A DNA stretch of 63,767 nucleotides, the filler included, from Octopus bimaculoides (Eukaryota): NCBI RefSeq assembly GCF_001194135.2. It is 8 parts of 8 records of this genome, joined end to end, with 100 filler letters (N's around TTAATTAATTAA, not from the genome) between each part and the next. Parts side by side here need not be neighbours in the genome. Positions count along the whole stretch, not along the records: positions 16,544 to 29,967 come from NC_068989.1; 7 more parts are not named here. One strand, written 5' to 3'. The notes beneath the pieces were generated by a model. The model saw nothing but the letters and a program-made list of their open reading frames with translations. It was not told the origin of the DNA and did no database searches. How positions within the stretch are numbered: position 1 is the stretch's first letter; the number at the start of each line of letters is the position of its first letter. Shown here piece by piece: positions 16,500 to 30,139 of this stretch. Made by a program: the position numbers and the translations under genes.

Positions 16500-16749
16500 N
16501 NNNNNNNNNNNNNNNNNNNNNNNNNNNNNNNNNNNNNNNNNNNTATATATATATATATATATCAGCATCATGTAACGTCCACTTTCTATGTTGTTTAATG
16601 TAAAGCCACTTGTATAATAGATGTGCTGTTGTGATGGTAATCCATATTAGTGTGTTAGAGGGATGCATATAACTTTGTTGTGTACGTTGCTGGGAGCAGC
16701 ATATACTTATCAGAAGATATCTGTTTGTTGACATTTATACACACATAAC

Positions 16750-17100
16750 ATATACTTAATTTGACGGTCTATATAGTTGTCTTAAAGGCATACACATAGT
16801 TTTGTAGTCTAAATTGTTGGATTAGAAGTATACACATAGTTCGGTGGGCTATGCTGTGTTAGAGACATACAGGTAATTTTGGGGACTATATTGTTCTCAT
16901 AGACATACACAGGTAATTTGGTGGTTTATACTTTTGTGATATAGACACACAAGTAGTTTTGCAGTTGATATTATTATTAGAGACATACATGTAGTTTGGT
17001 GGTCTATATAGTCATGTTAGAGATTTATATATACACTAGTATTTTGATGGTCAATATTGTTGCAACAGAGGCATACAGATAGTTTGGGAAACTATGGTGT
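16750..17100. repeat. Degenerate minisatellite of about 38-40 bp, about 9 copies
   Basis: Recurrent unit TAGAGACATACAGGTAGTTTGGTGGTCTATATTGTTGT with substitutions. Confidence 0.75.
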
Positions 17101-17689
17101 TATAATCAAAGGAATTCTAATAGTGAACAATGTTATTTCAAAAAAGAGTAAACAGTACATCAGAAATTCAGAACTAAAATCCAAACTTCTGATTATATGA
17201 GGATGTTTACAGGATTTTCACATTTAAGAGCAAGTAAAACAGAGAGATTGTGTACAAAAAGAAACAGTGTAACAAGTATTTGGCAAAATAGATGTCTTTG
17301 TCTTTCAAGTAACAAACCAAGGAGCAGAAAAATAGAGGTTAAAGAAGCTATTGGCATATTGTGTTTGAAACAAAGAATAAAGCAAAGAAAACTTGGAACA
17401 AAACACTGAGTTTTACAATAATAGATCTGACGCCAATAGAAGAAAAAAATGTGATAAAAAAAAACAGGATTTAGCACAAGAAACAGACTCTTCTAAGACT
17501 ATGCCAACATAAAAATGAATGTAATATGATAATAGAAATACAAATATTCTAACTGTAAAATAAATGTTTAATGATTTTAATAGGAAAGTATAAGCGTGTT
17601 GGATAGAAACAATTTGAATTAGAACAGCCATAGTAAACATTATTGGCATTAACAATATCACTATCATTGTCACCATCATTACTATCAAT

Positions 17690-18232
17690 ATTATCAATGC
17701 CATCAAGGTAACGAGCTGGCAGAACTGCTAGCATGCTGGGTAAAATACTTAGCAGCATTTCATTTGTCTTTATGCTCTGAATTCAAATTCTGCCAAGGTC
17801 AACTTTTCTTTTAGGATCAATAAAATAAGTACCAGTTGAGTACTGGAGTCAGTGTAATCAACCTACCCCCTCCCCTGAAATCTTAGGTCTTGTGTCTACA
17901 GTAGAAAGGAATATTATCAATGCCATCATGAGGGTGTATGGCTCAGTGGTTAGGGTATTTGACTCAAGATTGTAAGGTCATGAGTTTGATTCCAGTCTAC
18001 AAGGCAGCAAGCTGGCAGAGTCATTAGCACACCAGGCTAAACGCTTCCCAGCATTTCATCCATATTTATATTCTGAGTTCAAATTCTGCCAAGGTTGACT
18101 TTACCTTTCATCATTTCAGGGTCAATAAAATAAATAACAGTTAAGTACTGAGGTCAATGTAATCAACTTATCCCTCCCCCAAACTTACTGGCCTTGTGCC
18201 AAAATTTGAAATCAGTATTATCAATGCCATCA
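17690..18232 (+). mobile_element. Tandem SINE cluster bounded by three identical 17-mers
   Basis: Structure: SINE (about 17706-17911), a tRNA-like head (about 17935-17997) and a second SINE (about 17998-18215). TATTATCAATGCCATCA occurs at 17689, 17912 and 18216. Confidence 0.85.
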
Positions 18233-19593
18233 TCATTTTAATGACAACACTTATACAAGCTCTATATCAGATGTTCTGTCAGACCCTAACTTATCACACT
18301 CCTCTGTCAGTCTGTTGGGCCATGCAACAGATATTTGACCTGATTACTAGTTACAGTCCTGCATCAAGGATCCTTCAGTTCACTTATTTCAGGTCTGTGT
18401 CAAAAGATCAGCCAAGTCCTGCAACAGAGCTCCCTTACTTATCCAAGTCTTACAGTCAGTCAGACCAAACAACAGTTTTCTTGCTCAGCTTCAGTCTTGT
18501 TTCAATTGGTGTGTCTGACCTTGAGACTGATATTTCACCCAATCATCTGTTCATACACTTGTACTAAAGTATTTTGTATTCAAAGAACATCTTCCCAAAC
18601 AACCACATTCCTACATTAACTGCCAAGATTTTCATGTAGCCATAGAAACTGGAGCATGATGCTGTCCTCTAGTTCACAAGGATCCTGTCAAGCCATCCAA
18701 TCCATACCATCTGAGATGGGCATTAAATGATGATGATGATGAGGAGGAGGAGAAGGAGGAGGAGGCTAAACATTATAAGCACCAAACTGAAATAGAAAGG
18801 ATTGGTGTGATAAATAGGGCAGACAGAAACTGTATATAACACCATGAGGTGGAACTATGGAACAATTCTGGGTTAGTAGCAGACGTAATCCTTCATCCAG
18901 TTTCAACACCTGGTCTTTTAGTACTTTCTAACAGAGTCCACTCTGTCGTAAACATTCTCACCAGTGACCAGATCACTTTGCTGAAGATATTCCAAGAGTC
19001 ATAGTTTCTTCTATTTGCACAAAAATCACAGAAACCCAGTCAAAAAGATATGGGGACACTGTCACTCTTCCTTTAAATTATACAAAACAAATGAGCCTTT
19101 TTTATGTTTTGGTCAAGAGGAAAGGTCAATGCCTAGGATCCTTCTTGATGCTTCTGGAACTGGTGAAAGGGAGGGATGTATCCTCAAATCATAGATCAAG
19201 CCCAAATACTTGTGAAAGAGTGAACTCTGTTAAAGGTAATTAAGGGACCAGGTTGTGGTGTTAAACCAGGTGACAGATTAAGTTTAGCACCAAAGTAGGC
19301 AGGATTTGAACATAGAAATCAAAGGGCTGGAACCTATACAAAGATTCCTATCAGACACTCTAACATATCCACCAATCTGCTGTCCTAGATTGATGTTTTA
19401 TAAATTGACCTCAGTGGGATTTGAACTCAGGATGCAAAGTGCTGGAATAAAACTGCAATGCATTTTGTCTGATGCTCTAACAACTCTCCTATTCATCGTA
19501 AACATTGTTTCTCAGAAGGCTGGAAACAAAGGATGCCACTTGCATGACAGTGGTGCTTATTTTTAACTATTTTGTGATGTCAAGACAAGAACA

Positions 19594-19628
<35 letters not shown>

Positions 19629-22538
19629 ATTATTTTTGTGGTGGTGGTGGTGGTGGTGGTGGTGGTGGTATTGGTGCTAGTGATGGCAAAGAAGAAGACG
19701 ATGATGATGATAGCAACAGTAATGATAATGAGGATAGCAATGGTGGGATCGATGTCATCAATACTGACAACAGCTGCATTAAAAAAGGAGCAATTTGAAA
19801 ATTGTCAACTAAATCAATGAAATCTTGACTTCTTTTAACGAAACCAATACACCTTGAACTTCATCAATAATGAATGACGCAATACTAATGGTAGTAGTGA
19901 TGATAATAGTGGTGATGGTGATAATAACGATGATGATGATAATGATGATGACAGTGGAGATAATGATGAGGATGACGACAGCAACAACAATTTCTATTAA
20001 CATTTTCACTAATTAGTGTACTACATATTTTTTCCAACTCAAAACATCAGAAAGTAATTCCTGCTAATACTTAACCATGAATATTGCTACCCCACCGACT
20101 GACACCCAGAAATTTCTTTAAAGAAATATATTTTAATTACTTTCTCTAGCTTTTTTTCATATATCAGTAATTGCTTCGGGTTTTTTTTTTTCTTTCTCTC
20201 TAAAGATGATAAAGAAACAGTGAAGTTATCAAAAGTTTCTAGCTTAAACATGAATTGTCAGTAGGTTTTGTTTAATGGTACATCATCATTTATTTATCAT
20301 CATTGTTTACTGTACACTTTACCATGAAATTTGTTAAGGTAGCATTTTTATGGCCAGATACTCTTCCTGTCACTAACACTCACCTGTTTCCGAGCAAGGT
20401 AATATTTCTGCATAGCCAGATATGGTTTTCACTGAAGACTGGAAATGAAATACCTCACTTATATGGTGATGTTCATTTATAACCATCACGCAATGTCAAA
20501 ACAATGGTATGAACAAATACACTCACACACACACACAAACATGTCTTTTATCTTTTACCCGTTTCAGTCCGTAGACTGTGACCATGCTGGGGTACAGCTT
20601 TGAAGAATTTTAAGTCAAATGCATTGACCCCAGTACTAATTTTTTTTTAAGTTTGGCACTTATTCTATCAGACACTTTTGCCAAACCACTAAGTTACAGG
20701 GATGTAAGCAAACCAGCACCGGCTGTCAAGCAGTGGGCAGTGGGACAAACACAGACACAAAGACACACACACATATATATGTGGTTGGGAAGCAAACTTC
20801 TTACCACACAGCCACATCTGTGCCTATATTTATTTAATTTTTTAATTAAATTTAATATTTGTTTAATTTACAGTGCACTGGACCACGGTGAGCTCTGGTT
20901 CAGAAAAACCAGTAGTCTGGAAAGGCTTTGCAAGCAAAAGTTCAGGAAAATCAATGTTGTACTTGTATAAGTTATAAAATAAAAACATTTTTAACAATTT
21001 TCAAATTGCTGTATTAAAGAAGCAACATAGTAATGTTATGAAATATTTATCTTATCAAAATTAATGGTGTATTATTTGGAAATTTTCCAAGTAGCAGAAA
21101 CAGTGTGATATGATCAGATGTGAAAGAATTTGAAGAAAATGTCTTGACAAATATCTCAGCTATCTAAAATAATTCAACTCCAGTCTCCACCTAAATAGTT
21201 GCTCAGCCTGCTGGAAAATAGCAACCAAATCTCCCTCAACCATCTTACAATAGGAACGTTTACAAGCTGGTATATATATAATGTTATATACAGTTAGAGC
21301 TTATTTGCCATTATTGTTATGTTTATTAATCCAAGATATACCGTTAATGAAAACAAAATCTGGTGGGCAAAGCTGGAATGTCTGTGATCTAAGATGACTT
21401 TGGACCAAACAACAACAATGAGAAGAATAAGTTGGTATCATGTGACAATTCTGACAAGACATGGTGAATAACAATTAGTAAATGATTTTAAATTTTGGCA
21501 CAAGGCCAGCAATTTTGGAGGAGGGCATAAACTGATTATATCGATCCCGCCATCCCCAGTACTCAACTGGTACTTATTTTATCAACCCCAAAAGGATGAA
21601 AAGTAAAGTCAACCTCAGCAGTCTTCAATTAGTCAGCAGTTAGTAAATGACAAAGCATTTCACAGAGAACCTTGATATATTGTTTACTACTACTACTACT
21701 ATCACCAATACCATCAGTGTCATCATCACTCCAACTACTGCCACCACACCATTACCATCACTACTACTACTACTACTACTCCCACCACTACCACTATCAC
21801 TATACTGTGGCCCCTACCACCTACTTTACCATCAATACTACCTCTGCCACCCCTCATACGACTACTACTACAATTATAACTACTACAACTACAAACTGAG
21901 GGAGGTGTTGGTGATGTTGTTTAGCCTGAAATCAGAGAGGTTCCAGTCATTAACATCCTACCTTTAGTGAGGTTGTGTATCTAGGACTACGTTATCCAAT
22001 GTGTCCTTTTGTAAGGTGAAATATTTTGCCAATATTCATAGCAGGTTTGAGTAATCACATAGAAACTCCTGCATTGGTTCAGACAATACACACTCACTCA
22101 CACATATATAAACACCCTGCCACACACACACACACACACACACAAAACATACACACACACACACACAAAACATACACACACACACACACACACATACATG
22201 CATATATACATACACAAAGATGCATTTTAAACACATATGTATACATACATCTGTACAAATACACACACAGATTAAAATATATACATACATACATACATAC
22301 ACATATGTACACTCACAAACATAGACACACTCACCCATATACATACACACACTCAAACATACATACGTACATACACACATACCTATTGCTGTTCTTGTTT
22401 GACAAGATTATTTCGCTCTAATAGAGCAGAACAAAAATATGCTTGTCAACAACGATATCAATAAATTTAATTTACTATAAATTATTATCAATTTCTATCA
22501 TTTAGTTTGCGGTTTGCCTCATTAGAACAGCCACAGTC

Positions 22539-22602
<64 letters not shown>

Positions 22603-22605
<3 letters not shown>

Positions 22606-23251
22606 TATTCAGTTTTATTTCAAGAATTCTTGCCAATAGAGAAAGAGCCAGTTTCTAACCTAGATCCAAGGCTCGTTCATTGGCATTTCAACAGCATCAA
22701 CAGGGTATTTTTGTACGTATGTAAATATGTATATGTGCGGATTTGTATGCTTTGTTTTATGTATGTATTCCCATGCATATAGCTGCATATCTAAACATGC
22801 TCATATATATTTAAATGATAAACTTCTCGAAAGTTTTACAGATTTTTACAGTTCCAGTGATGGATTGGATCTGTAGTCTTCAAATCAGCTTTCTCCTTTC
22901 TGGTTTTGAGGAGCCTAATTTTTCAAGATTGGTATTTAGGCAGTGGTTTCATATCTCAGCGCCGCAATAATTACAGGTATAAACCTGAACTTGTAATTTG
23001 GATAGAATAGCTGTAGATTACTCACAGCATAGGTATTCTCTTTTTCACTGATCTTTGGCTTTATGTTAACATCTGTCGGGCAGCTGATTTCCACAACTGT
23101 ACACAGTTTCTCTTCTCTATCCTAAATTACTATGTCAGGTCTATTGTTTAAATTTTATTGAGGTCTTCACTGGGATATTCCACTGGCACTCCTTTTTAAT
23201 ACCAGTGGCTACGGCTTCTACCATACTGTATGTTCTTATTTCTTTGGTCTC
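22603..23251 (-). mobile_element. 5'-truncated R4/Dong-type non-LTR retrotransposon (REL endonuclease C-terminus plus 3' UTR), pseudogenised
   Basis: The minus strand reads WNIPVKTSIKFK / NRPDIVI*DREEKLCTVVEISCPTDVNIKPKISEKENTYA / SNLQLFYPNYKFRFIPVIIAALRY, with frameshifts. RPD...E.SCP is the PD-(D/E)xK-type REL motif. It ends AATAAAACTGAATAAT next to (CA)n. Confidence 0.85.
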
Positions 23252-24334
23252 ATGTATGTACGTATGTATGTACATACATATGTATGAAAATACATATGTA
23301 TGTTCTTTTAGTTTAGAGTGAATTTTAATCAACCACCAACTTGCTAGCAAGGTTGTGAAGGAAAGCATCTTATTTTAATCATCGTGATCATTTGTAGCAT
23401 ATGAATTAAGGACTTGCATTCTATATAATATTTACTTATGAAGGCATGTGGCCAAGTTGTTAGGATGTTCAGCCCATGACAATAGAGTCAAGGGTTCAAT
23501 TCTTGGACTGGATGATGCGTTGTGCTCTTGAGACAAATGCTTCGTTTTCACATTGTGCCAAGTAAATCACTTGTAATGAAAACCTGCCAGGTGTTGACAC
23601 AACCCTCCTCTCTTTCCCCAGCTGTTACCTCCCGGATATTTTACTGGATCAAAGAGCAAAAGGGCCAAGAAGATGTTTGTGTATACTTATGCCAACATCA
23701 GGTACCTAAAACAAATAGCAAAAGTTTCATACATGCTACCAAACCATACTTGCCTGCATGTGACAGTTAGTTATACTACCAGTAGTTTACCAAGCAAAAT
23801 GTAGTACAGATATAAATATTGTAAATGTAATACAGACTCAAAAGATGGGGTTAATAGATGAGCCTAGAAAATTATAATCTTATAACAACCCATCTCAAAG
23901 ACATATAGATATTTAACACACATACACACACACACAGAGTAACACATCTGCAGACTAATCTCAGCAAAATGATATATCTTCATATCCATTCCACTTTACA
24001 ATTTTCTACTTTTAAAAATATTTATTTTTGTTTCAATCCAGCTGTATAAAACACAATTAGACAACATGCAAGTACAGTTTTAATCCATAACACATGTGAG
24101 TTTTCAAGTAGAATTACAAAATATTTTTTACTGCCAGTAAACTTTTTTTGAAGATAGTATTAGATAAACACAAAAGCATGTGGATGTGTATGTACTGTAT
24201 AAATTTTGTGTGCGTGTGTATGTGTGTGCATGCACGCACACACGTGTATATATAGTTACATACATATACATGCACATATATATATATACATGCATATATT
24301 TATGTGTGTGTACATATATATTATATATATACAT

Positions 24335-24382
<48 letters not shown>

Positions 24383-24483
24383 GTGTACATATATATATAT
24401 ATATATACACATACTCATACTTACATACACACATACACACACATGTATATTATAATCATACTAAATATAATATGTATATTATG

Positions 24484-24534
<51 letters not shown>

Positions 24535-25731
24535 TATATACATATACTGTTCCAAAATTTGCACTCTGGGTGGACTGTTAATCTACCTAGGGCTGTTGGA
24601 TCTTCAGCCTAATGTGCAATCATAAAGAGCCTATAAGAAAAGAAGATATGTGATAGCATCAATGATTTTTTTTTAGCATAAATAAATTTTATCACACAAA
24701 AATTCGTTGAGTCAAAACTCTGCCTAATCTTCAAGAACTATAGTACTACTAATTCTTAGAGATTTGTCCAGTATTAAACTTCACCCACTCATATCAAGTC
24801 AAAATTTCACTTAATTCAATCTAAAAGTTTGGCTATGTAACGAATAGTAAAACTAGTACAAAACTTATAAAGATTGTCTCTGACAGCTGTTTCTGGGACA
24901 TCCCAGCCATTGGAGCTTCGTATCAAGCAAAGACTCTATAAGTCGGGTATTCCATCACCAGAGAAATATAGGTTAGACAGTGGAAAGAATGCTCCACATC
25001 AATGATATTTGTCATGGTTCAATATGTCCAGGAGGGTAGGAGGGTCCAACTAAATCCAGTTTGGGTCAGGTCTTCTTTAGGTAAATCCATAAGAAAGAGT
25101 GGTTGCTAATCTTTACCCACCTTTTTGCAGATATTCACAGATTTTTTTTTACTATTCTGGCTTTTATTTATTTTTTATATTTTGTGTGTGTGTGTGGGTC
25201 TGTTTACAATATATCATCTCTCCTCACTTACTATCTAAGGATGCCATCTTGCCATTTTGATAACAATATTACAACATTTCTATTTTCTAACACTGCATCA
25301 AAGAATGTGTGTGTGTGTGCGTGTGTGCACACGCACAGGCATGGCTGAATGATAAGAAGCTTGTTTTCCAACTATATGGTTCTAGATTCAGTCCTATTGT
25401 GTGGTACCTTGGGCAAGTGCCTTCTGCTACAGCCTAGGGCCAACCAAAGCCGTGTGAGTGTATATGGTAGACTGAAAGTAAAAGAAGCCTGTCATGTGTG
25501 TGTGTGTGTGTGCCTTTGTGTCTGTATTTCTCTCCACCACCACCACCACCACCTCCTCTACATGACAACAGGTGCTGGTGTGTTTACATTAACATAACTT
25601 AGCAGTCCAGCAGAAGTGACTGACAGAATAAGTACCAGGTTTTAAAAAGTATTGGGGTTGATTCATTCAACTAAAAATTCTTCAAAGCATTGCCTCTCAT
25701 CGTCGCAAAAAGATATACATACATACATGCA

Positions 25732-25774
<43 letters not shown>

Positions 25775-26164
25775 ATATCAAAAAAACAAAAAAAAGCAAC
25801 ACAGATTTTAAAGGTTATTGCAGTACGCACATTTCATGCAACTCCATTTATTTAAGTAATGCGAGCATTACATTAAATGCAAAATGCAGAGCAATCTTCA
25901 GCTGCACAAGAANNNNNNNNNNNNNNNNNNNNNNNNNNNNNNNNNNNNNNNNNNNNNNNNNNNNNNNNNNNNNNNNNNNNNNNNNNNNNNNNNNNNNNNN
26001 NNNNNNNNNNNNNNNNNNNNNNNNNNNNNNNNNNNNNNNNNNNNNNNNNNNNNNNNNNNNNNNNNNNNNNNNNNNNNNNNNNNNNNNNNNNNNNNNNNNN
26101 NNNNNNNNNNNNNNNNNNNNNNNNNNNNNNNNNNNNNNNNNNNNNNNNNNNNNNNNNNNNNNNN

Positions 26165-26224
<60 letters not shown>

Positions 26225-27269
26225 CACACACATAATTTCTGCCAATTGTGAATTCTAATTTGACTTTTAAAAGCCATTTGAAAGAAAAATGAAATTGGCT
26301 CATGATACAAAAGAACTTTTGGAAAAAACTCAGAAAATAGATTCAATATGAAGAAACTGACTATTACTTCATGTTCCATGGATTTTATCTGCAAGGAAAG
26401 GATTTGATCAATAAGAAAATTGCTACTGAGAGGCCTCTTATCTCCAACCATAAAGAGTTCAAAAATAGTAATTATCTTCACTGCTTGTTATCCAATTTCC
26501 AAATCGGTTAAGTATAATTCTTCAACTAGTACCCAGTTTGTTTTCTCCATAAACTTCTACTTCAATTGTTATATGTCTCAGTTCGCATTTTGCAGTTCAT
26601 AAGAACTAAAGATTTTAAAAGGTAGTCAGAATTTGTACTGCAGGCTGGTGGATGAAAATAGCATAGAAACATAGACAAGATTTCAAAGTTACCCAGATTT
26701 TAAAAAAGATATCATTTGTTGGAGTAGACTTCAGGAGCCAGTTGTGACTTTCATATTCACAGCAGCAGCTATGGAAGCCAAGGTGATGATAGAAGCCACA
26801 ACAAGCATAGAAGCCACAGGTGTTAGCCCAGATGCTGACTATGAGTGCAGCTGACGGCAGGTACATGTCTCAGTGGTAGTAGCAACTACTTGAACAAGAT
26901 CTTTGAAGACCAAAGTGGAGAAAAGTTCTACGCCAACAGTGGTCAAGCATGTGTCGGTCAGTTCTAAGAAGCAGGCAAAAGCTTCCACATAAGGTACCAG
27001 ATCCATCGTTGTAATTGAGTATGCAGTCGAACAAGACACTGCACATGACCACAGCGGTCATTGCATTTAAGAGAAATAAGGTTAATATCCCAAAACTTGA
27101 ACTCAGAGATTGTCAGTCCAGCAATGGACACATGGCATGTCTTCACACATCTGTGATCGAAGCCATGCAGATGTAGGCACAAAAATTTGCATTCATTAGT
27201 AAAGACATATATGTACTGTAAGAATGCTATGATACTGTGATATTCATTCTGAGAAAGCATCTTGTACAG

Positions 27270-27480
27270 AAAGAGTAAAGACTCCCTTTGGTCAAGAACA
27301 ACCATGGGATTGCACCAAGAAAGTTCCCCTCTGAGGTACAAGACCAGGCCAGCAATTGCCAGACACCCCTCAGACACCCCAGGCCAGACACCCCTCTCCA
27401 TGCCACTGATGTTACCCAGTGCTGGTACAACTCATTTCTGCAGTTGAGTGAACTGGAGTAATGTAAAATAAAGTGTACAG
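27270..27480 (-). mobile_element. tRNA-derived SINE, 3' part
   Basis: CCATGGGATTGCACCAAGAAAGTT...CCCCTCTCCATGCCACTGATGTT...ACTCATTTCTGCAGTTGAGTGAACTGGAG matches the copy at 43450-43770. Confidence 0.75.
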
Positions 27481-27581
27481 AAATATACAGCAGTATTATG
27501 CTGTTCTTAAAGTACACGTTAAGTAGGATAATACAAGTACAGTTTGCTATTCAATATTAATACAACTTCTGTTGCTGATGA

Positions 27582-27628
<47 letters not shown>

Positions 27629-28778
27629 TTGATTTGTATAGATTTCTAATCTTTTTTCAAGTGTGTGTATATATATATATATTTATATATATATATATAT
27701 ATATAATATATACCATATTTTATCTTTTCCTTGTTTCAGTCATTTGAACGTGGCCATGCTGGGGCACCACCTTGAAGAATGTTTAGTCAAATGAATCAAC
27801 CCCAGTATTTTTATTTTCTTTCTAGAGACTGGTACATATTTTATTGGCCTCTTTTTGCTGAACCAGGGACATAAACAGGGACATAAACAAACCAACACTG
27901 GTTGTCAAGCAGTGTTGGGGGACAAACACATACCCAAAGACACATACACAAACATGCATAGATATATACATACATATATATATATATATATCAAGAGACC
28001 TGTATATATGTCAAAATACAGGTCTCTTGACATGTTCATCAAAATGGGACGTGTAAACCAAACACTAATCAACTGAAGTAATTTAGTAAAACCACACACT
28101 GACTGGTCAGAATACAGCTTGCAAAACTTAACATTCTGGAGCCTGTACAAATATATTTAAGGCAAACATTTTAGCCATCTCACTACAGTTGTAAATTGTA
28201 AAATATAACTGTCACCACTACTATATGAATCTGAAGGCATGTAGTAAGGCTGTCCAGAAAAGACATTGGTTAAAAGTGTTTATATTCTAAATTTACTTTT
28301 TAAATTTCAAAATTAATTAAAAGGGATTTTTCATAAATCAATTTTTTATTAATGGGATGTAGGTAATTTTAACTTGTGTATATCTGATATGCATTTATAA
28401 TTATTGTTGTATTGAATAATTATTGATAGATTTAGATTAGCAGCAGTCAGGGCTATTATCCCCAACTGAAAACCTAGGTTACTTAAGGTGAGCCTGGTAA
28501 CTGATGGTTTTCGGGTCTTGCTGTTTGTAACTTTTGGTGAGCCATGGTGCAACCAACAAGATGGTAAAATTCCCTGCCATTGATTGGATGTGGAGGGGTA
28601 ATATCAAATAATTCAAGTACAACATATATTTAAATTAAACACAAAAAAAATTGAAATATCATCATCACTTACATGGAAAGATTGAAATATTATCTTTCAG
28701 TATTTTATAAATTAAAATCTTAAGTTATTAATTGACACATTATTAATTAACAGCAATGCCTGGAAAAATTATGGATTA

Positions 28779-29261
28779 CATGGGAAAATGTGAGCATGGA
28801 AAGTAATATTCTTAAGATTATAAACTTTGAAAATTACAGGGCAAGTTATTACACCTGTAAAAGCATAGGACAAACTATTCTTCTAGTAAAGTAAAGAATA
28901 AGAAACTTTCTACTTAAAATATTGCAGCTAAAATTAAAATTTGAATATGAAAAATTATTTTATTATAGTTTACAAGTAACACTATACTTATTTAAGTAGA
29001 ATTTGGCTAATTTACTACCTGAAATACAGAAAAAAGTGAGTAATTAAACAAACTTACAAATTAGCTGAACAGTTTTGTACAATAAATTTAAAAGATGAGA
29101 ACTGTAAAGAGAGATAAATTAGAAGAACTGTCATTTCTTGCTGCAATATTTTAAGTAAAAAGTTTCTTATTCTTTATTTTACTAGAAGTAATAGCTTGTC
29201 CTATACTTTTCCAGGTTTATAATCTTAAGAATATTACTTTTCTTGCTCACATTTTTCTATG
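28779..29261. repeat. Long inverted repeat (arms 28779-28928 and 29140-29261), MITE-like
   Basis: The left arm GAAAATGTGAGCATGGAAAGTAATATTCTTAAGATTATAAAC...TTCTAGTAAAGTAAAGAATAAGAAACTTTCTACTTAAAATATTGCAGC matches the RC of the right arm closely. The left arm has about 30 bp extra. Confidence 0.85.
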
Positions 29262-29262
29262 T

Positions 29263-29302
<40 letters not shown>

Positions 29303-29305
<3 letters not shown>

Positions 29306-29436
29306 AGCCGTAGAAACTCTGCTAAATCAGATTGGAGCCTGGTGTAGCCATCTGGTTTCACCAGTCCTCAGTCAAATCGTCCAACCCATGCTAGCATGGA
29401 AAGCTGACGTTAAACGACGATGATGATGATGATGAT
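29303..29436 (+). mobile_element. Short RTE-type retroelement 3' tail with (GAT)n end, inserted in (TA)n
   Basis: CCAGCCGTAGAAAC...CGTCCAACCCATGCTAGCATGGAAAGCTGACGTTAAACGACGATGATGATG. An older related tail lies at about 18630-18740. The RTE assignment rests on the tail pattern only. Confidence 0.6.
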
Positions 29437-29574
29437 ATATATATACTTATATATGTATATATATATATATTTATATATGTGTATATATACTTATATACGT
29501 ATATATATACTTATATATGCTTATATATATATATATCTATACTATATATAAAACAGAGGTGTGTGTGTAATCGC

Positions 29575-29790
29575 TTTTCACGTGAAAACGGCTTCACTAT
29601 TTACTTCCATACTTGTGATACATGAATAATTTCACCTCGGATAAATCTTAGGCTCTTCATTTGATTTTTTTTTATCTCTAATTAAAAATAAATAATATTG
29701 CTTTATATTTAAGATTCACTTCTTTATAAAGGTTTCTCAATGTCAACTTCCGGTACGGACGTGAAAAAATGGCGACGTCTCTCACTCTCT
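29575..29790. promoter_or_regulatory. CpG-containing, TATA-less promoter candidate (ETS + YY1 + E-box)
   Basis: ACTTCCGG at 29746-29753 (ETS), AAAATGGCG at 29766-29774 (YY1) and the perfect palindrome TTTTCACGTGAAAA at 29575-29588. Local CpGs are intact next to a CpG-depleted domain. Confidence 0.55.
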
Positions 29791-30139
29791 ACTTTTAATA
29801 TTCGCTTTCTGTAAACAACTACGATGAATTACTGAAACACATATTTACGAAGTTCATAAATTTAAATATTCCGTACAAGATAGTTTTTAACGTGCTTTTA
29901 TTTATACGATTTTTGGGCGTTCCATGTTCATCTCATTCATTCTTTGCAATGTTCTCTCTCTCTCTCTNNNNNNNNNNNNNNNNNNNNNNNNNNNNNNNNN
30001 NNNNNNNNNNNTTAATTAATTAANNNNNNNNNNNNNNNNNNNNNNNNNNNNNNNNNNNNNNNNNNNNCGCGCGCGCGTGACTGTGTGTGTGTGCGTGTGT
30101 GTATGAGTATATATAAATGAATATGTCCATATTGACAGA

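Follow-up and report, generated by a model that had tools for sequence, protein, structure and literature searches.

In Octopus bimaculoides, under 10% of the CpGs carry methylation, and methylation is concentrated in the bodies of ~14,000 genes and is low on transposons; in 8,972 genes, grouped as 'methylation pattern 2', the gene body is methylated and the start site is not (Macchi et al. 2022, PMC9476566). The locus described here is part of a 63,767-nucleotide (nt) stretch of O. bimaculoides DNA (the window), in which eight parts of the genome are joined end to end. The genomic sequence analysed is the part from NC_068989.1, at window positions 16544–29967 (13,424 bases, including a gap of 252 N at 25913–26164), and it comprises a long CpG-depleted stretch, 16544–29300, with old copies of repeats that resemble short interspersed elements (SINEs), followed by a short segment rich in CpGs. 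In primate Alu repeats, CpGs decay at around ten times the rate of other sites, and old copies are CpG-free wherever they are found.

The locus is probably best explained as CpG-poor octopus DNA of the methylated type, carrying old repeats, which abuts an unmethylated promoter-like island. A first-pass annotation had instead described a domain of CpG erasure with sharp limits, taken as the body of a gene that is unannotated, broadly expressed and methylated in the germ line, and had used the SINE copies as internal controls.

CpG depletion and its right-hand boundary

CpG content was expressed as the ratio of observed to expected CpGs (o/e), and the CpG count of the part was also compared with mononucleotide shuffles. 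The whole part contains 98 CpGs where the shuffles contain 381 ± 17, and its dinucleotide ratios are 0.26 for CpG, 1.31 for TpG, 1.44 for CpA and 1.00 for GpC at a G+C content of 34%. The depleted stretch (16544–29300; 12.5 kb without N) has 76 CpGs and an o/e of 0.21, or 0.222 when repeat families A, B and D (see below) are masked, and each 1-kb window up to 29.5 kb falls within 0.05–0.37. Germ-line methylation of cytosines classically leaves a footprint of CpG loss with a matching gain of TpG and CpA, and it is most probably the cause here. The strong depletion with conversion to TpG and CpA that had been claimed for this DNA was borne out. However, the sharp left boundary placed at 16.6 kb is the edge of the part (16544) and an artefact of concatenation, so that its sharpness carries no meaning.

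The assembly gap at 25913–26164 is followed on its right flank by (TA)30, and (TA)n tracts are a typical stopping point for assemblers. The flanks (400 bases on each side) have only (AT)n in common, and no repeat copy or reading frame split by the gap was found. As the two sides are depleted alike (o/e 0.22 and 0.16), no conclusion hangs on continuity across it.

The right-hand boundary, which the first-pass annotation had put near 29.25 kb, is real, sharp and inside the part. A likelihood scan of the CpG rate along the part located a change point best placed at 29374 (support 29274–29404), where the o/e changes from 0.21 to 1.71 (likelihood-ratio statistic 47; Poisson P = 8e-13). No CpG is present at 28513–29308, where 12.9 would be expected at an o/e of 1, and the last 668 bases of the part hold 22 of its 98 CpGs (o/e 1.38 for 29300–29967). 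A copy of repeat family D lies on the boundary itself (29302–29428, minus strand). Its divergence at non-CpG positions (K) is 0.108, and it keeps 4 of 6 CpGs where 18% would be expected for its age (binomial P = 0.012). Because this copy is not young and yet keeps its CpGs, it argues for a local difference in CpG decay, and it is the one repeat that does so.

Beyond the boundary, ~540 nt of a CpG-replete, promoter-like island are visible (29430–29967) before the part ends. There are 16 CpGs in the 408 nt at 29560–29967 (o/e 1.63; G+C 32%), and 400-nt windows from 29401 on have an o/e of 1.67–1.86, against a maximum of 1.13 among 1,199 windows of the 61-kb background described below. The sequence at 29540–29967 had no repeat match within the part or in that background. 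In the background, an annotated RabGAP-TBC gene shows a rise in o/e at its 3' end from 0.23 to only ~0.43, and the jump to 1.7 resembles a protected start region more than it does the mere end of a gene. An ETS-like motif, CTTCCGG, is followed 14 bases on by a YY1-like motif, AAAATGGCG (29747–29774, plus strand), and an E-box, CACGTG, is located at 29579–29584; such sites are typical for the start regions of broadly expressed genes. The ETS-like/YY1-like pair was found once in the window, and neither in 100 dinucleotide-preserving shuffles nor in the background loci.

Within the depleted stretch, depletion is strongest at 16544–19494 (o/e 0.11, against 0.25 in the remainder), with a likelihood-ratio statistic of only 7.5. 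This segment includes 18240–19260, where nothing identifiable was seen and each kb has only 2–3 CpGs despite 39% G+C, and a degenerate tandem array at 16748–17112 (unit of ~40 nt, 7–9 copies, 60–77% identity). An inverted repeat is located just left of the CpG boundary (28778–28928 and 29140–29262; arms of ~120–150 nt with 74–79% match, ~210 nt apart) and may be a small foldback element or one resembling a miniature inverted-repeat transposable element.

CpG loss in repeat copies of matched age

The control for the repeat copies was 61 kb of Octopus vulgaris DNA, consisting of three 20-kb stretches (L002, L003 and L004) from three chromosome records of assembly GCA_951406725.2. Consensus sequences were made from the O. 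vulgaris copies alone, for family A (221 nt, 15 CpGs), family B (392 nt, 18 CpGs) and family D (151 nt, 8 CpGs), with 12, 19 and 10 copies, respectively, in the 61 kb; six of those of family D are in L002. The three families are dispersed Octopus SINE-like repeats. For each copy, K and the state of every consensus CpG were recorded. CpG retention was modelled as exp(−lambda × K), where lambda is the rate of CpG loss per unit K, and the lambda of the part was compared with that of the background in a likelihood-ratio test.

Six copies in the depleted stretch were scored. Those of family A are at 17704–17929 (plus strand; K = 0.142, 1 of 15 CpGs kept, with 6 TG and 7 CA), 18000–18233 (plus strand; K = 0.127, 0 of 15) and, as a partial copy, 21483–21621 (minus strand; K = 0.155, 1 of 7). 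Those of family B are at 20546–20815 (minus strand, middle part missing; K = 0.192, 1 of 11), 25342–25776 (plus strand, near full length; K = 0.159, 0 of 15) and, again partial, 27718–27972 (minus strand; K = 0.160, 0 of 11). Together they keep 3 of 74 CpGs, and almost all of the remainder have become TG or CA. The loss of CpGs that had been claimed for the listed copies thus holds for these six, whereas the copy at 19.4 kb (19255–19560, minus strand), which a comparison by eye with the reverse-complemented A consensus relates at strong divergence to the head of family A, is too diverged to be scored. The three decayed strings quoted in support of that claim are present exactly, at 17.79, 18.09 and 20.68 kb, and the strings quoted as their 'consensus' occur in the consensus sequences built independently from O. 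vulgaris.

All six copies are old, with K values of 0.127–0.192 (mean 0.156), and none of them has a K below 0.1. Background copies with K of at least 0.12 (n = 13) keep 10 of 99 CpGs, which does not differ significantly from the 3 of 74 in the part (Fisher p = 0.16), while those with K below 0.07 (n = 12) keep 78 of 149. The estimates of lambda were 20.8 for the part and 15.7 for the background (likelihood-ratio p = 0.135), and 21.5 for L004 alone. At the measured decay rate, half of the CpGs are lost by ~4–5% non-CpG divergence. As the copies in the part lost CpGs roughly as fast as equally old copies elsewhere in octopus genomes, they mark no special domain and do not serve as the internal controls that they were taken for. 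The first-pass annotation had itself named the alternative that they are simply older insertions, and at 12.7–19.2% non-CpG divergence this is largely what they are.

Published annotation of the O. vulgaris genome puts SINEs at 11.6% of the sequence, lists most of them as 'unclassified' and dates a burst of SINEs and long interspersed elements to a Jukes-Cantor distance of 0.065, ~18 million years ago (PMC13282606). By the same repeat clock, the copies in the part were inserted roughly 35–55 million years ago, and the CpG-rich copies with which they had been compared, which lie in other, unrelated parts of the window, are most likely members of the young burst.

At all four loci, including L002 and L004 where there is no credible gene, CpGs in SINE-like copies were lost 13–21 times faster than non-CpG sites changed. 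This implies long-term methylation of these repeats in the germ line, in tension with somatic methylomes, in which octopus transposons are reported to lack methylation (PMC9476566). Were the same rate to apply genome-wide, germ-line methylation of octopus repeats would extend, or would formerly have extended, well beyond what somatic methylomes indicate; this extension we regard as rather doubtful.

Decayed CpGs were also unequally divided between TG and CA on the plus strand, with ratios of 20:42 in the part (p = 0.007), 27:59 in L002 and 50:32 in L004, and no asymmetry in the RabGAP-TBC gene body (10:9). As a marker of the direction of transcription this asymmetry was dropped, since it takes either sign at the control loci and is absent in the real gene sampled. 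It differs from locus to locus, and replication or transcription may lie behind it.

A reading frame within a family B copy (20614–20829) matched an O. vulgaris hypothetical protein (CAI9733340.1; 65% identity, E = 3.5e-9) in an exhaustive protein search, and further relatives were found among O. vulgaris and O. bimaculoides proteins. When six-frame translations of the SINE copies were searched as a concatenated sequence, there was no protein match at E ≤ 0.001, probably because exact 5-residue words common to decayed and intact copies are too scarce. Scans with a SINE motif pattern found nothing in viral contigs and, in metagenome contigs, one chance match (L001) that is not the repeat. A SINE head derived from transfer RNA (tRNA) or another small RNA was not detected: ARAGORN called no tRNA in the part, and when young copies from L003 and L002 were compared with Rfam, nothing matched a tRNA at E ≤ 0.1. 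The segment between the first two family A copies (17935–18000), in which ARAGORN likewise finds no tRNA, resembles a tRNA-like repeat head by eye (GGCTCAGTGGTTAGG...GGTCATGAGTTTGATTCC). In L002 (10790–12050), five or six copies of family A are arranged head to tail in one orientation, suggesting that the SINE-like unit also occurs in short tandem arrays. Beside a young family B copy in L003, the sequence at 1937–2164 (minus strand) matches the MIR8562 precursor family at 68.8 bits, below the gathering score of 211, and is probably another repeat.

Genic content and competing explanations

Outside the repeats, the o/e of 0.222 for 16544–29300 was compared with the control loci masked in the same way, which gave 0.448 for L002, 0.296 for L003 and 0.288 for L004 (20 kb with no credible gene annotated). 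Within L003, the o/e is 0.226 in the part of the annotated RabGAP-TBC gene, 0.256 in a second gene model, 0.43 between the two models and 0.37 beyond the second. The depletion of the stretch therefore fits the genic value and is barely separable from non-genic DNA; it is at the low end of normal and at most mildly unusual. Values of 0.2–0.25 are normal in vertebrate DNA, but a vertebrate origin was rejected because the repeats belong to Octopus families. Because the non-genic octopus sample is itself at 0.29–0.45, a low o/e alone singles out no gene, and the stretch is compatible with methylated genic DNA and is no stark island of erasure.

No match at E ≤ 0.001 was found for any of the 77 non-repetitive reading frames of at least 40 amino acids (aa), searched as a concatenated sequence, in a set of 5.8 billion proteins that includes octopus proteins. 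The two most gene-like regions, 18200–19320 (minus strand only) and 26480–27580 (all frames), contained no Pfam domain, and an impression by eye that the first of them is a decayed reverse transcriptase was abandoned when the Pfam scan gave noise only. No Rfam family was found above threshold in the part. Dozens of sub-threshold Rfam matches to microRNAs (mir-297, mir-466, mir-3149 and similar) fall on TA/CA microsatellites at 22236–29319, most densely at 24189–24547, and were set aside as artefacts of composition. The stretch may yet contain exons shorter than ~120 nt, untranslated exons or non-coding transcripts, and an intron of 12.7 kb would be unremarkable in octopus.

The region richest in G+C (26600–27550; 41%) holds the longest reading frame (145 aa; 26964–27401, minus strand), for which neither Pfam nor the protein search gave a match and a contig index had no record. 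At 26875–27293 the sequence weakly matches eukaryotic large-subunit ribosomal RNA (36.6 bits, under the gathering score of 50), and 27279–27414 resembles L002 17585–17726 (71%), so that at least part of this region is a repeat.

In the explanation that we favour, 16544–29300 is ordinary CpG-poor octopus DNA, most probably long methylated at cytosines in the germ line, and would be either an intron or gene body or a methylated flank. Old SINE-like copies in it would have lost their CpGs through deamination of 5-methylcytosine to thymine. At 29.3–29.4 kb it gives way, within ~130 bases, to a segment in which CpGs are as frequent as expected at random or more so. Should a gene run leftwards from the island, the stretch would be its first intron and body, and the first-pass annotation would then be essentially right; should a gene run rightwards, the stretch would be upstream DNA or a neighbouring gene.

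Several points weigh against this explanation. The stretch is numerically the most depleted sample, at 0.22 against 0.29 for the next lowest (p ~0.08, calculated by hand from counts), and the background is small, its three loci having been reached via gene models built from repeat sequence; it may also represent an Octopus species other than that of the part. A total of 80.66 million CpGs has been counted on both strands in O. bimaculoides (PMC9476566). Taken with the genome size and G+C content, that count would correspond to a genome-wide o/e of ~0.5–0.6; if this is right, the three control loci may under-represent CpG-richer DNA and the part is less ordinary than it appears here. The identification of the island as a constitutively unmethylated promoter or 5' end is inferred from composition and from post hoc motifs: the motif pattern was picked after the sequence had been read and is a lead rather than a test. 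Moreover, a YY1 motif in its usual orientation would send transcription rightwards, away from the depleted stretch.

That the stretch is the body of a hidden gene with SINE copies as its witnesses is possible and, on balance, improbable. Its CpG/TpG footprint is clear and, outside the repeats, its o/e of 0.22 is the same as in an annotated gene body and lower than in the flanks of that gene (0.37–0.43), but L004, where there is no credible gene, also reaches 0.29. Similarly, the abrupt, promoter-like boundary on the right has no counterpart on the left, where the boundary is the edge of the part. The loss rate in the copies is numerically above that of the background (20.8 versus 15.7), but same-age copies elsewhere are erased alike (p = 0.14–0.16). 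Gene-body methylation is the published pattern in octopus (PMC9476566), and the predicted exons found no counterpart in the protein search (frames of at least 40 aa) or, in the two most gene-like regions, in Pfam. Thus, for the gene body proposed at first, the footprint, the genic o/e and the right-hand end stood, and the argument from SINE controls and the left edge fell, with no exon match among 77 frames.

Age and history alone would explain the depletion as the relic of a past, low-level, genome-wide methylation on old sequence, with no gene and no present methylation, and the right-hand end as younger DNA. All six measured copies are indeed old, with no copy of K < 0.1 in the stretch, at every sampled locus, loci lacking real genes among them, the decay of CpGs is ~16 times faster than that of the remaining sites, and somatic methylomes report little transposon methylation in octopus (PMC9476566). 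However, the boundary copy of family D, at K = 0.108, is not young and nevertheless keeps 4 of 6 CpGs (P = 0.012), 29540–29967 has no repeat match in the part or the background, and the o/e of the island (1.6–1.9) is above that of the youngest repeat-rich background windows (maximum 1.13), which leaves this account unlikely. It is very unlikely that the boundary is an assembly artefact in which unrelated octopus fragments were falsely joined at the (AT)19 or (GAT)n/(TA)n microsatellites of 29266–29550. The change point does coincide with these microsatellites and there is already a gap at a (TA)n tract on the same scaffold, but microsatellites occur throughout the part, there is no N or other sign of a join at the boundary, and the family D copy aligns continuously across 29302–29428. 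Both of these accounts are less likely than methylated-type DNA abutting an unmethylated island.

Significance and relation to known systems

The positive residue of the analysis is modest, a single sharp CpG boundary that is probably an unmethylated promoter beside methylated DNA. Two cautions follow for work of this kind, namely that comparing CpGs between repeat copies without matching for age yields false 'domains' in genomes with repeat bursts, and that joining unrelated pieces yields false boundaries. The fast decay of CpGs in repeats, if confirmed genome-wide, bears on germ-line methylation of transposons in octopus and could matter more than the boundary. The hypermutability at the sampled loci is at a vertebrate-like level and, if it applies genome-wide, CpG-replete islands such as that at 29.43–29.97 kb would be informative landmarks, as they are in vertebrates.

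In their loss of CpGs, at ~16 per unit of non-CpG divergence, the octopus SINE-like copies resemble ageing primate Alu copies, although the repeat families and the host are different and octopus transposons are reported to be weakly methylated in somatic tissue (PMC9476566). The island is like a vertebrate promoter CpG island in being a short CpG-replete segment amid CpG-poor DNA, with ETS-like, YY1-like and E-box motifs. However, its G+C content of only 31–32% is below the usual criterion for such islands, and just 540 nt of it are visible.

The signature here, in which CpG o/e is low and the GpC ratio normal, is that used as a proxy for germ-line methylation in invertebrates such as Ciona, honeybee and oyster (PMC4378273, PMC3840415). 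In those studies the classes are at ~0.3–0.6 versus ~1 (PMC4378273, PMC3840415), whereas the sampled non-genic octopus DNA is already at 0.29–0.45, which makes for a weak contrast.

The closest likeness is to the O. bimaculoides genes of 'methylation pattern 2', as CpG-depleted DNA rich in TpG and CpA directly adjoins a CpG-replete segment of a few hundred bases. Unlike in those genes, the gene here is putative and may run in either direction, and the depleted side might just as well be upstream DNA or a neighbouring gene. The pattern is nothing new in kind, having already been described for thousands of octopus genes.

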